From the sequence record OQ992562.1: DNA of 64,000 nt, one strand, 5' to 3'. Made by a program: the position numbers and the translations under genes. Shown piece by piece: positions 2,441 to 6,721 of this stretch. The notes beneath the pieces were generated by a model. It saw only the letters and a list, made by a program, of their open reading frames with translations. It searched no databases and was not told the origin of the DNA. Numbering within the stretch: position 1 is the stretch's first letter; every line of letters starts with the position of its first letter.

Positions 2441-2938
2441 ATGAACTGCATGATTCCTGCAAATGAGCGTGACAGTGAACTCAGTCTCTATGGCTATTTG
2501 ACCTCTGTTGTAACTGGTGGGGTTGCTTGGGATTATAACCCTATCGTTCTGCTGGAGAAGATGTGTAATCGTGATGATGAGGCCATCTGCATGGGTGAAC
2601 CCAATTACGATCAATTACGTTTGATCGGTGCAAGGGGTATGTTCGAACAGATCTCTGAAAACATCCTGTCTCGCAATGAACAAATCATGGATGGTGTTCG
2701 TGATTTCTTCAAAGATGGTCTCCAGTTGAAAACCAATGTAGATGACATGTTGGTGAGACTGAATTATCAAACTGTGCATAACGGGACTGATATGGATGAG
2801 GTGATCATGGTAAACTTGTTCAAAAAAATTGATGGTGATTATGTGGTTGCTCATAAGTGCACATATGACCCTCAAGATTGGAAACATGCGTTATATTACT
2901 TCACCAATGCCTCCATGATCAGTCAAAAACAAAAATAA
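2441..2938 (+). CDS. Hypothetical protein
   Basis: Start moved to ATG 2441 (GAGGA RBS). Confidence 0.7.
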   Translation: MNCMIPANERDSELSLYGYLTSVVTGGVAWDYNPIVLLEKMCNRDDEAICMGEPNYDQLRLIGARGMFEQISENILSRNEQIMDGVRDFFKDGLQLKTNVDDMLVRLNYQTVHNGTDMDEVIMVNLFKKIDGDYVVAHKCTYDPQDWKHALYYFTNASMISQKQK

Positions 2939-2979
2939 ATATCATGCATATCCCTTCAGGTAATTTTAGAGAGGTTATT

Positions 2980-3255
2980 ATGAGCAATAAAGATGTATCA
3001 ATGATCCCAGTTTATGAAAATCACTTTGTCACTACTGGTGCTACTCCACGACATGAAGCAATTGTGGTATGTCGTGAATATGGTATTAATCCATTAGATG
3101 ATGCACCATTTCGGGGTTCATGGGTGATGCGCTACCGAGAGACTGGCAAATTCATTGATTGTTCCAGGGATATTGATGATTTAGCTAAGAAATATAATCT
3201 GACCATTCATAAACCAACCATTGAATTATACACCAGCACGTATATTGGTCAATAG
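2980..3255 (+). CDS. Hypothetical protein, REYGINP paralog family (copy 2)
   Basis: Start moved to ATG 2980 (GAGGT RBS); motif shared with 1735..1986. Confidence 0.75.
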   Translation: MSNKDVSMIPVYENHFVTTGATPRHEAIVVCREYGINPLDDAPFRGSWVMRYRETGKFIDCSRDIDDLAKKYNLTIHKPTIELYTSTYIGQ

Positions 3256-3260
3256 AAAAA

Positions 3261-3285
3261 AAACCACCCTATATAAGGGTGGTTT
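3261..3285. terminator. Stem-loop, probable terminator
   Basis: AAACCACCCT-ATATA-AGGGTGGTTT. Confidence 0.6.
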
Positions 3286-3301
3286 ATAAAAGAGGTGAAA
3301 T

Positions 3302-3565
3302 ATGCATAAACTTAATCCTGGTTGTTATCCATTAACTATAAATCCTAATGGTAAGTTTCTGAATAAAGACGATTTACGGAATCTTCCCAATGGGATTTAT
3401 GTAACTTCTCCGTTACATGGTCCTAGGGTATATAGCCATGATCGACGCGTTATGGTTGATGGTGATTATTGTTATCTAATCACTGCACCGAACATAAAAT
3501 TCAAGGTAAGTGATTTCTTTAAATATAATGTAGTTTATTATCCGAGCATTTACCTCAAGAGGTAA
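3302..3565 (+). CDS. Hypothetical protein, NLPxGxY/HGP paralog (copy 1)
   Basis: GAGGTG RBS; NLPNGIYVTSPLHGPRVYSHDRR resembles NLPDGEYYTIPKHGPQNWRYDRK of 3921..4148. Confidence 0.7.
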   Translation: MHKLNPGCYPLTINPNGKFLNKDDLRNLPNGIYVTSPLHGPRVYSHDRRVMVDGDYCYLITAPNIKFKVSDFFKYNVVYYPSIYLKR

Positions 3566-3572
3566 TAAATAA

Positions 3573-3857
3573 ATGGCAAACGAATGCACTCCCGGTGTCT
3601 GGGATACACTAGTTGACTCGACAAAAGAAACTGAAAACCTACGTATCCGTTCCCAACTCATGCGGGCTCTCACCCGTACTATAAAGGGCTGGGATCTTCC
3701 GCAAAAAGACGCTGCTGCTCGCCTACATGTTACGCAACCGAGATTGAATGATCTTCTCAAAGGCAAGATTGACAAGTTCTCTCTGGACGCCCTGGTAAAC
3801 CTACTGGACGCGGCTGATCTGACTCTTGAGATATCAGTGATCCCACGTGCAGTATAA
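3573..3857 (+). CDS. XRE-family helix-turn-helix protein (HigA-antitoxin-like)
   Basis: GAGGT RBS; LPQKDAAARLHVTQPRLNDLLKGKIDKFSLDALVNLL is a classic XRE HTH; hand count ~49% GC. Confidence 0.85.
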   Translation: MANECTPGVWDTLVDSTKETENLRIRSQLMRALTRTIKGWDLPQKDAAARLHVTQPRLNDLLKGKIDKFSLDALVNLLDAADLTLEISVIPRAV

Positions 3858-4975: not shown

Positions 4976-4988
4976 ATTAACGACATAA

Positions 4989-5010
4989 GCCCTCTCCTTC
5001 GGGAGAGGGC
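4989..5010 (+). terminator. Stem-loop terminator
   Basis: GCCCTCTCC-TTCG-GGAGAGGGC. Confidence 0.8.
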
Positions 5011-5044
5011 ATTTATTCAGTTAAACATTTAAGAATAAAAGAAT

Positions 5045-5117
5045 TAGCCCTACTGCTGCAACAGTAGGGCTATATGCCGTTGAGTAAAAAATACTCAACA
5101 TTTTCGCCCAAATGGGC
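5045..5117. repeat. Three tandem inverted repeats upstream of 5141 gene
   Basis: TAGCCCTACTG/CAGTAGGGCTA (5045-5072), GTTGAGTA/TACTCAAC (5079-5099), GCCCA/TGGGC (5106-5117). Confidence 0.75.
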
Positions 5118-5140
5118 TTGGATTAACAAGAGGAACCATC

Positions 5141-5446
5141 ATGTTAATTCCAGTTACCGCTAACAATGTTAGCCCTGACCTGCACAGAATGCAGGATGTG
5201 GGTTTCTTTTTCAAGAGACCCGATGGATCAACCCATAGCATGTCAGTTGCGAAAATACACGCTGATAATGTTATCCAATGTCGAGATCGTAAAGGTCACT
5301 TCATTGGTTATTGGGCTGGTCCTACGATAGGATACGTCAACAACGCAAGTTTAGCCGTATCCATCAACCCCTTCGACAATTTCATAGTAACGGACACTGA
5401 CATGGATCAGAAGAAGTTCTATGTAACCGAAAGGAGAAGCCTATGA
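5141..5446 (+). CDS. Hypothetical protein
   Basis: GAGGA RBS; 101 aa followed by hairpin. Confidence 0.65.
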   Translation: MLIPVTANNVSPDLHRMQDVGFFFKRPDGSTHSMSVAKIHADNVIQCRDRKGHFIGYWAGPTIGYVNNASLAVSINPFDNFIVTDTDMDQKKFYVTERRSL

Positions 5447-5454
5447 TAAACAAC

Positions 5455-5474
5455 CCCTCTCCTTCAGGAGAGGG
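5455..5474 (+). terminator. Stem-loop terminator
   Basis: CCCTCTCC-TTCA-GGAGAGGG. Confidence 0.7.
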
Positions 5475-5505
5475 ACTTATCTGAATTCTTTTTTTGTTTA
5501 AGTGA

Positions 5506-5980
5506 GAGCCGCCCGCTAAAGCGGCTCCCAAGTGGAGTTAAGTCTCCCGCTAAAGAGACACTCCAGTATACATGGGGTAGCGACTCCTCATGTAGATATC
5601 CTAATTAATCTCTTTAGCTAGTAATCAATACCAGTTATCACTCGTTGATAATTGATTTGTTTATTAACTAATTTGACTTAATCAGAATAATCAATACATA
5701 TTGTTAATAACCTAGTATATTATTACCAGTATCATTGAGTAATACTGGTAATCAAATATTACTCATGAATATTACCTAATGTGGAACTGATGAATCGGAT
5801 CGCCCCGTAGGGGCTTTTATTTCATAATAAACTATACCGAAGGTATATCCTTATTCTAATAATAAACAATATTAGCATTATTCTAATAGCGTTAGCTAAT
5901 ACATACTGTCTCCCTAAAAGGAGACACAGTGTAGATTATATTTTTTTTAATTAAAAAATAATAAGTCTAGAGATAGACTT
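5506..5980. other. Non-coding AT-rich region dense in inverted repeats (candidate origin or structured RNA)
   Basis: Lies between convergent genes; at least 7 inverted repeats; no ORF of 60 aa or more. Confidence 0.5.
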
Positions 5981-6062
5981 TCTTTATGCCTTTAATACCT
6001 TCTAATTTGCTCTATAATCGATTTTATTCATTATCTACTAGCATATTAGCCATACGACATAA

Positions 6063-6082
6063 AAGCCCTCCTATGAGGGCTT
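6063..6082 (-). terminator. Stem-loop terminator of minus-strand genes
   Basis: AAGCCCTC-CTAT-GAGGGCTT just past the stop at 6090. Confidence 0.75.
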
Positions 6083-6089
6083 AAATGCT

Positions 6090-6326
6090 TTATTTTTCAT
6101 TAGTCGGATATAGGAGTACAATAGACTCTGCGCATACTTTAATAACTTGGATATTTTCACTGTCATTATTTTTTGATTGTTTATTTTTAACGCAGTATTC
6201 AAATTGTTGGGATTTGAGTTTATATACGTTATTGTTCTCTTCTCCCAGTATTCCTCCAAATACCAATCCTAGGATAAATATTAATAAACCACCAATAAAG
6301 ATAATATAAACATTACCATAGTACAT
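6090..6326 (-). CDS. Small membrane protein
   Basis: AGGAG RBS; TM segment VYIIFIGGLLIFILGLVFGGILG; two Cys in soluble part. Confidence 0.75.
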   Translation of the reverse strand: MYYGNVYIIFIGGLLIFILGLVFGGILGEENNNVYKLKSQQFEYCVKNKQSKNNDSENIQVIKVCAESIVLLYPTNEK

Positions 6327-6327
6327 A

Positions 6328-6696
6328 TTACATTAACTCCTTTACATCATCTGGAATAGATTCACACCGATCTAAATCCCAGTAGATGTGTGTATAGTGA
6401 TCTTGGTTTACGATACTGATAAAATCCCCATTAGGATCGGGTAATGGTTTACGGATAATATCAACGTAAATAGTGTAATATAAATAAAGATCACTGATGA
6501 GTTCATCAATGTTTAAATTATTACCCTCTGCATATTTCCCATATTTAAAATAATGGGCTTCTTCTGCTACAGCATAACGGATTTTATCGTAATTTTGTGA
6601 TGCGGCATATACACGTGCAAATAGAGGGCGATTAAACTTTCTACATTCACTAATATTTTTTCTTAAAGTATTTACTAAATTATCAATTGCACTCAT
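6328..6696 (-). CDS. Hypothetical protein
   Basis: AGGT RBS; 122 aa abutting next gene. Confidence 0.7.
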   Translation of the reverse strand: MSAIDNLVNTLRKNISECRKFNRPLFARVYAASQNYDKIRYAVAEEAHYFKYGKYAEGNNLNIDELISDLYLYYTIYVDIIRKPLPDPNGDFISIVNQDHYTHIYWDLDRCESIPDDVKELM

Positions 6697-6721
6697 TTAG
6701 ATTACCTATTAAAATTATAGT

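Follow-up and report, generated by a model that had tools for sequence, protein, structure and literature searches.

A probable transcription-control and boundary region beside the helicase operon of phiKZ-type phages

The stretch of DNA considered here, 64,000 nucleotides of sequence record OQ992562.1 (hereafter, the window), belongs to a Phikzvirus genome, and the subject of this report is a noncoding island at positions 5447-6089 that adjoins the operon of a DnaB-like helicase. Our reading, to which we would assign a probability of about 0.55, is that the island serves a phiKZ-type phage for transcription control and as a boundary, and that it is made of part types that are already known. 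Its left third holds a mapped middle promoter and a published noncoding RNA (ncRNA); the remaining ~360 bp would be a stack of phage-type intrinsic terminators that face both ways and keep convergent transcription units apart; and a central module of 56 bp, consisting of two hairpins, appears to have been retained in three genera of nucleus-forming phages of Pseudomonas aeruginosa. The island is largely accounted for by the published phiKZ transcript maps and its main content is already known; the cross-genus conservation of the module is previously undescribed and, like the probable mis-annotation of two small genes (117.1 and 117.2) to the left of the island, is a modest new point.

Positions 5300-6300 of the window match several Phikzvirus isolates (vB_PA32_GUMS, PhiPizzaParty and others) at 100% identity and phiKZ 114525-115524, where the flanking genes are the same, at 98.1%; below 5953, a window position equals the phiKZ coordinate minus 109225. 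A first-pass annotation, made from the letters alone, had singled out the island as the largest gap in the window, and it is indeed the longest stretch free of open reading frames (ORFs), at 624 bp as compared to 196 bp for the next. The very AT-rich tracts that it reported are also borne out, as the 400 bp of lowest GC content in the window lie inside the island (27% over 5651-6050, compared to 38% overall). Every repeat and hairpin that had been described is found in its place, including the terminator hairpins that face inward from the two borders (5455-5474 on the plus strand and 6063-6082 on the minus strand), and the observation is real and no chance effect.

The promoter P060 and its noncoding RNA

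The promoter, terminator and ncRNA of the left third are published knowledge (2020-2024). The features of this part of the island are as follows.

5698-5747, minus strand: middle promoter P060, with +1 at the G of 5697 within TATG and a TACT motif at -20 to -17
5499-5697, minus strand: structured ncRNA (TU089, or "5'UTR-p40"), with read-through to ~4982 as TU088
5506-5528, minus strand: T053, the terminator hairpin of the ncRNA, with an apex, CUUUAGCGGG, in common with hairpin 5543-5560
5622 and 5688: the two copies of a direct repeat, TAATCAATAC

P060 fires on the minus strand at 5697 and most of its transcripts stop at T053, near 5499, to give an abundant and highly structured ncRNA of 197 nt, while the remaining transcripts continue to ~4982. 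In phiKZ, the transcription start site (TSS) of P060 is at 114922 on the minus strand (window 5697), as listed in the supplement of Putzeys et al. 2024 (PMC10914365) and as also mapped by Wicke et al. 2021, and T053 is at 114725 (window 5500; Putzeys et al. 2024, PMC10914365). The former study, which used ONT-cappable-seq, describes both a gene-less unit of 197 nt from P060 to T053 (TU089) and a read-through unit of 715 nt (TU088) that ends at terminator T051 (114207, window 4982). The same RNA had been detected by Grad-seq as the ncRNA "5'UTR of p40" (UTR, untranslated region), a structured species of ~180 nt that was confirmed by Northern blotting and is thought to be ended by premature termination (Gerovac et al. 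2021, PMC8545117); Putzeys et al. 2024 report recovering it (PMC10914365). The presence of a mapped middle promoter inside the island, used by a neighbour, overturns the initial statement that neither neighbouring gene needs a promoter here.

The locus in the window is orthologous to that of TU089, on the minus strand between gp117.2 (p40) and gp117.3 (p41), and it agrees with the phiKZ element in strand, ends, length class and terminal stem-loops, as well as in the stop that precedes the downstream ORFs; the window copy differs at a few positions (5559, 5567, 5633 and 5689). The minus-strand RNA from 5697 to 5495 folds with a minimum free energy of -67.9 kcal/mol and a z score of -6.35. It is highly structured, with two hairpins at its 3' end that have the same apex and different lower stems, and the last of these is the premature terminator. 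Three left-side hairpins that were absent from the first-pass annotation (5506-5528, 5543-5560 and 5569-5594) are part of this known RNA.

Contigs from the public RNA runs of four studies end at the same points. One contig covers 4974-5692 and adaptor-tagged RNA 3' ends fall at 4982, 5499 and 6056, which places the ends of the ncRNA in these data at 5692 and 5499, as compared to the published 5697 and 5500. Summed contig depth, which takes one mean per contig and is not a local measure, is greatest in the bins from 5523 to 5735. The nanopore run and the 2018 run are contig-free from 5736 to ~6019-6044, and two other runs have low-depth contigs over this right zone (4982-5948 and 5665-6700), the latter with a depth of ~1% of the summed contig depth in the top ncRNA bins. 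Contigs start again at 6045-6077, near the terminator of the helicase operon. A structured ncRNA locus, which was one of the roles first suggested for the island as a whole, is thus the right description of its left third, where it is already published.

Searches for other familiar elements gave little. ARAGORN finds no tRNA or tmRNA in the window, the best cmscan matches to Rfam families reach at most 22 bits (gathering thresholds, 36-134), and sigma-70 promoters are at chance level, with 8 found and 11 expected. A sponge for RsmA was also considered and set aside, as GGA motifs are too few in the sequence when inspected by eye. The transposon-sequencing and antisense-oligomer papers on phiKZ are silent on this intergenic region.

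Terminator-like signals on both strands

The intrinsic terminators of phiKZ have a consensus signature, a stem-loop followed by TTAT (Putzeys et al. 2024, PMC10914365). A scan for stem-loops with TTAT within 0-4 nt on the transcribed strand detects 10 such signals in the island, as compared to 0.85 +/- 1.0 (maximum 5) in 300 dinucleotide shuffles, and the density of signals is 15 per kb in the island and 1.1 per kb in the whole window. Between 4500 and 7000 there are 12 terminator-like sites where 1.4 are expected. The 10 stem-loop and TTAT signals of the island are distributed over both strands, at 5455, 5802, 5833, 5856, 5860 and 5963 on the plus strand and at 6082, 5980, 5888 and 5847 on the minus strand. 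The scan is validated by the fact that the same signature marks gene ends in phages PA1C and PhiPA3. Besides the module, which is described below, the features that carry these signals or lie among them are listed here.

5452-5477, both strands: terminator hairpin after the plus-strand ORF that borders the island, of the bidirectional type, with a TTAT tract on each side
5846-5888: two-copy direct repeats (TATCCTTATTCTAATA / TAGCATTATTCTAATA, and ATAATAAAC twice) that form small AT hairpins followed by TTAT
5900-5948: hairpin 5906-5930, with a T8 run on the plus side and GTATG on the minus side; one RNA contig ends at 5948
5943-5980: a 16-bp AT palindrome (5943-5958) and a hairpin (5963-5969 / 5974-5980) with TTAT after it on both strands
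6056-6085, minus strand: helicase-operon terminator, hairpin 6063-6082, with a perfect match to the phiKZ consensus tail TTATGTCGT

The helicase operon ends at 6056 behind this last, consensus terminator, where the exact tail coincides with an RNA 3' end, and a second RNA 3' end (5499) lies behind the hairpin of T053. Like phiKZ-type terminators in general, most hairpins of the island are followed by TTAT. A hairpin similar to that at 5452-5477 follows the plus-strand ORF of PA1C, which is not homologous to the ORF of the window. The published phiKZ maps place no TSS or terminator between 114923 and 115313.

Short DNA matches between genera are also seen at a terminator outside the island. The bidirectional terminator T051/T052 (4989-5010) has ~90% BLAST matches over 36-41 nt at non-syntenic places in PhiPA3, 201phi2-1 and Phabio, which indicates that consensus-type terminators alone can give short cross-genus DNA matches.

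A two-hairpin module conserved in three genera

5802-5857, both strands: module consisting of a GC hairpin (5802-5814), TTTTATTT, two variable bases, TAATAAAC, a second hairpin (5833-5847) and TCCTTATTCT
5713-5761, both strands: imperfect palindrome centred on 5737, with an 11-bp perfect core and TACT motifs on both strands
5756-5776, plus strand: two AAnnTTAC words, a candidate middle promoter with a predicted start at ~5781-5796
5756-5762 and 5769-5775: two copies of the word ATATTAC

A wider stretch around the module, 5795-5880, is 100% identical in most Phikzvirus genomes. When the island was compared to phage genomes by BLAST, 58 bp of it (5810-5867) proved to be 89.7% identical to sequences of Pawinskivirus (PA1C, PS119XW, phiHQ, HPP-Temi and others), in contrast to a DNA identity of 65.6% for the helicase gene and an amino-acid identity of 27-32% for gp117.4, the value for Pawinskivirus being 27%. 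Synteny is also kept, with the module downstream of the gp117.4-helicase operon in each of Phikzvirus, Pawinskivirus and Miltoncavirus; in PhiPA3 (Miltoncavirus) it lies inside an 808-bp gap at the same place, and HPP-Temi has kept it despite the insertion of a gene of 338 codons between operon and module. One copy per genome was found when the whole genomes of PA7 (Phikzvirus) and PA1C were scanned for its pattern, and BLAST finds it in one place per record. Further relatives were not found: exact and gapped patterns applied to IMG/VR and Joint Genome Institute (JGI) metagenomes returned only PhiPA3 itself or chance matches in AT-rich ORFs, and BLAST with the PhiPA3 copy returned only Pawinskivirus, the syntenic places of 201phi2-1 and Phabio being left uninspected. 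Mini-ORFs in the module are not conserved, the string ATG AAA TAA occurring in the window only.

The hairpins change in sequence between genera and their pairing is retained, as judged by eye and from single-sequence folds, while the three flanking tracts are invariant. The first hairpin is GCCCC-GTA-GGGGC in the window and CCTCC-GGA-GGAGG in the other two genera. The second is TATACC-GAA-GGTATA in the window, AATACC-GAA-GGTATT in PA1C, with the outer pair swapped, and the wholly different GAGTTAC-GTTA-GTAACTC in PhiPA3. On one or other of the strands, each invariant tract coincides exactly with the 10 nt that come behind a hairpin; all three include TTAT and agree well with the terminator consensus. 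Because the invariant tracts sit where the consensus tail would, our reading of the module is that of a compact terminator or insulator acting in both directions, which might in addition form the end of a plus-strand RNA of ~45 nt. It would differ from ordinary phiKZ-type terminators in that its hairpins have stems of only 5-6 bp and loops of 3 nt and stand back to back, with one AT spacer serving both strands, and in that its sequence conservation across genera is far higher.

Several observations weigh against this reading of the module and of the right zone. On neither strand do the published maps or the contigs contain an RNA 3' end at 5802-5857, and the contigs carry neither strand nor level. 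The silence of the right zone in two runs implies little traffic for back-up terminators, which fits poorly with conservation above that of the helicase gene. The stem of the first hairpin, at only 5 bp, is below those of typical phiKZ terminators, and a pure terminator model leaves unexplained the 83% identity between PA1C and PhiPA3 over ~45 nt upstream of this hairpin, in which both a TTACT word and a T(A/T)ATG are found. The evidence for covariation is also thin, since it comes from three independent lineages and since MAFFT mis-registered the first hairpin, which precluded a formal count of pairs.

The conserved DNA upstream of the first hairpin is one of the reasons to regard a divergent plus-strand promoter with an RNA of 30-45 nt as a serious rival, although on balance we think it rather unlikely that the conserved core is the gene of such an RNA. 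Transcription would begin at ~5781-5796, directed by the TTACT word at 5759-5763 or by the second word at 5772-5776, and end at the GC hairpin and its U-tract (~5822). In a read-through form the RNA would extend to the T8 run at 5948 (~165 nt) and could adopt a four-way junction closed by pairing of its purine-rich leader to the conserved UCCUUAUUCU. The middle-promoter motif, AAanTTACc/TACT, is expected ~20-24 nt upstream of a start, and matches to it occur at 5756-5764 and 5768-5776, at the right distance from T(A/T)ATG; PA1C, HPP-Temi and PhiPA3 each have a TTACT word in the corresponding position. The sequence from TTACT through a leader of ~25 nt to the hairpin and its U-tract is 83% conserved between PA1C and PhiPA3 and aligns with the window, and the arrangement of this hairpin and then TTTTATTT does not vary among the three genera. 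In the predicted folds of PA1C and PhiPA3 the leader pairs with the conserved CCUUAUUC and encloses three hairpins, the plus-strand RNA 5781-5950 of the window has a fold z of -3.3, and one RNA contig has its end exactly at 5948. On the other hand, the phiKZ maps list no plus-strand TSS or terminator here (the ONT-cappable-seq table has no plus-strand TSS between 114163 and 117303), although the method misses RNAs shorter than ~80 nt (Putzeys et al. 2024, PMC10914365) and would be blind to the short form. Two of the RNA runs are contig-free over 5736-6019, the leader of phiKZ has little similarity to those of the other genera, and TACT and ATG are 17-18 nt apart in the window but 13 nt apart in PA1C and PhiPA3. 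The fold of the 90-nt core is no more stable than those of shuffles (z = -1.0 in the window and -0.85 in PA1C), and there is no convincing target for the conserved tract in the phage genome; as a small-RNA seed, TCCTTATTCT was rejected, since its complement has one perfect match in the phage genome, which is not at a start codon.

A conserved small RNA is known from jumbo phages, namely sRNA005 of 201phi2-1, upstream of the tail gene gp182 (Poppeliers et al. 2024, PMC11512511). The candidate in the island resembles it in being a short unit from promoter to terminator that is positionally conserved in several genera of the Chimalliviridae. It differs in locus and sequence and in having no downstream gene, whereas sRNA005 is visible in ONT-cappable-seq and lies in a 5'UTR.

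The putative plus-strand promoter adjoins the long inverted repeat of the island. The 11-bp repeat that was first described (5722-5732 / 5742-5752) extends to 20-nt arms (5713-5732 / 5742-5761) that are 85% complementary, sits 25-55 bp upstream of the P060 start and overlaps the P060 upstream region. The repeat may be this upstream region itself, mirrored by a possible divergent promoter on the plus strand, and the palindrome could be an operator or a divergent promoter pair. Its 9-nt loop (5733-5741) exists in two versions among Phikzvirus isolates, which differ at 5733, 5735, 5737, 5739 and 5741, and the arms are constant. It is also conceivable, although we consider it very improbable, that the palindromes and the invariant AT-rich tracts are sites for a phage DNA-binding protein, be it a regulator acting on the divergent promoters or a factor that initiates packaging or is associated with the nucleus. 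In favour of such sites, distances of ~40 bp and ~44 bp separate the centre of the 20-nt-arm palindrome from the P060 start and from the predicted plus-strand one, respectively, the covarying hairpins have invariant sequence between them, and the gene of a helix-turn-helix protein, gp114, lies 2 kb upstream. Arguments to the contrary are that the 11-bp core repeat is not kept in PA1C, whose module comes directly after a terminator, that the palindrome loop varies freely within Phikzvirus, and that covarying hairpins point to single-strand structure rather than to recognition of the duplex.

The first-pass annotation had also suggested a replication origin, a packaging site or a nucleus-tethering site, and for these roles nothing was found beyond the circumstantial support of AT-richness, a promoter and the adjacent helicase gene. 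As an origin, the island or its module would work through a transcript from P060 or from the putative plus-strand promoter, which would form an R-loop in AT-rich DNA beside the DnaB-like helicase gene and prime synthesis. The R-loop origins of T4, ori(uvsY) and ori(34), combine a middle promoter with an AT-rich unwinding element, and the island is like them in having a middle-class promoter close to replication genes and beside very AT-rich DNA; the likeness is one of architecture only, there being no change of skew at the island, and R-loops and replication starts are hypothetical here. The 27% GC over 5651-6050 would suit an unwinding region, a mapped middle promoter lies inside the island, the island adjoins the helicase operon in three genera, and the module is single-copy and more conserved than the surrounding coding DNA. 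All plus-strand hairpin loops of the module are, moreover, of the form C-GNA-G or C-GNNA-G, and such loops form very stable mini-hairpins in single-stranded DNA. Chimalliviridae are without a primase, and RNA-DNA hybrids have been speculated to be their initiation sites (2026 preprint), so that a transcript-primed origin would fit these phages. We found no reported origin for them, and a 2026 review of jumbo phages mentions none.

Other evidence argues against an origin. Cumulative GC and AT skew, the former having been proposed at the outset as a way to recognise an origin, rise monotonically over the 267-kb genome of the near-identical PA7, with no turn at the island (74.7 kb), in what is a weak test since the skew here tracks the orientation of genes. 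The direct repeats are two-copy only and form no iteron array. The terminator consensus accounts for the invariant tracts, and most of the hairpins have the signature of phage terminators. As PA1C lacks the ncRNA unit, this unit cannot be the conserved part. We consider it improbable that the island or module is an origin, and just as doubtful that the module with flanking middle promoters is a transcript-primed (R-loop) origin common to the nucleus-forming jumbo phages of P. aeruginosa. A transcription-control and boundary region remains our preferred reading of the island.

Neighbouring genes and the coding strand

5141-5446, plus strand: left neighbour, an ORF of 101 amino acids (old gp117, PHROG 25431), probably a real gene
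6090-6326, minus strand: right neighbour, gp117.3 (p41, 78 amino acids), the last gene of the DnaB-like helicase operon

Annotations differ on the left side of the island. The RefSeq record of phiKZ has two minus-strand ORFs there, 117.1 (p39) and 117.2 (p40), whereas most other records have the plus-strand ORF of 101 amino acids. The latter is intact in 12 of 12 Phikzvirus genomes, while among the same genomes p39 is interrupted early in two lineages, by a stop at codon 3 in the window and by one at codon 16 in phage 124.01. The plus-strand ORF has a GAGGA Shine-Dalgarno sequence upstream and a match to a PHROG family; it is preceded by a hairpin and then TATATG, of the late-promoter type, and followed by its own terminator of hairpin and TTAT. 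The pattern of substitutions is uninformative on the coding strand, as third-codon positions coincide in both frames, and the plus-strand ORF shows no homology to the ORF at the same place in PA1C. Judging from these comparisons of sequence, the plus-strand ORF (old gp117) is likely to be a real gene, and 117.1 and 117.2 (5095-5403, minus strand) are probably shadow ORFs and an annotation error. The neighbours of the island would then be convergent, as the first-pass annotation had supposed; that description depends on the plus-strand ORF, which comparison favours, whereas RefSeq annotates ORFs of the minus strand there.

If the plus-strand ORF is real, the 715-nt read-through transcript of P060 is antisense to gp117 and not a messenger RNA. 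If p39 and p40 are noncoding, the published name "5'UTR" would likewise not apply, and the RNA would be a free-standing ncRNA. The transcript of the late promoter P059 (window ~5231, minus strand) would also be antisense to gp117 if p39 and p40 are shadow ORFs.

Some further differences between relatives were observed around the island. A block of ~80 bp at window positions 5037-5119 is 78% identical to part of the PA1C locus (extract 3501-3576), and the ORFs that follow it are non-homologous. It contains a hairpin, TATATG and a leader with a GCCCAAATGGGC hairpin, there are compensatory changes in the first hairpin, and it looks like a conserved cassette of promoter and 5'UTR before exchangeable small genes. 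To the right, SL2, OMKO1, T2P and related isolates have no gene 117.3, which is therefore dispensable, and their island abuts gp117.4 directly. The gene inserted in HPP-Temi (extract 2459-3475) is annotated as a "virion structural protein", lies between the gp117.4 homologue and the module, and is absent in PA1C. The DnaB-like helicase of PhiPA3 is annotated in two pieces (extract 1-2445), ~1.8 kb apart, with a putative endonuclease gene between them that may represent an intron or a homing element.

In the broader context of the nucleus-forming phages, the density of terminators in the island suggests that these phages insulate convergent transcription units with several stacked terminators, in a setting in which transcription is uncoupled from translation, and stacked terminators of this kind could serve phage engineering. 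The module, more conserved over three genera of jumbo phages than the helicase gene, marks a sequence-specific signal, be it a bidirectional terminator that acts on the phage RNA polymerases, a tiny RNA or a DNA site.

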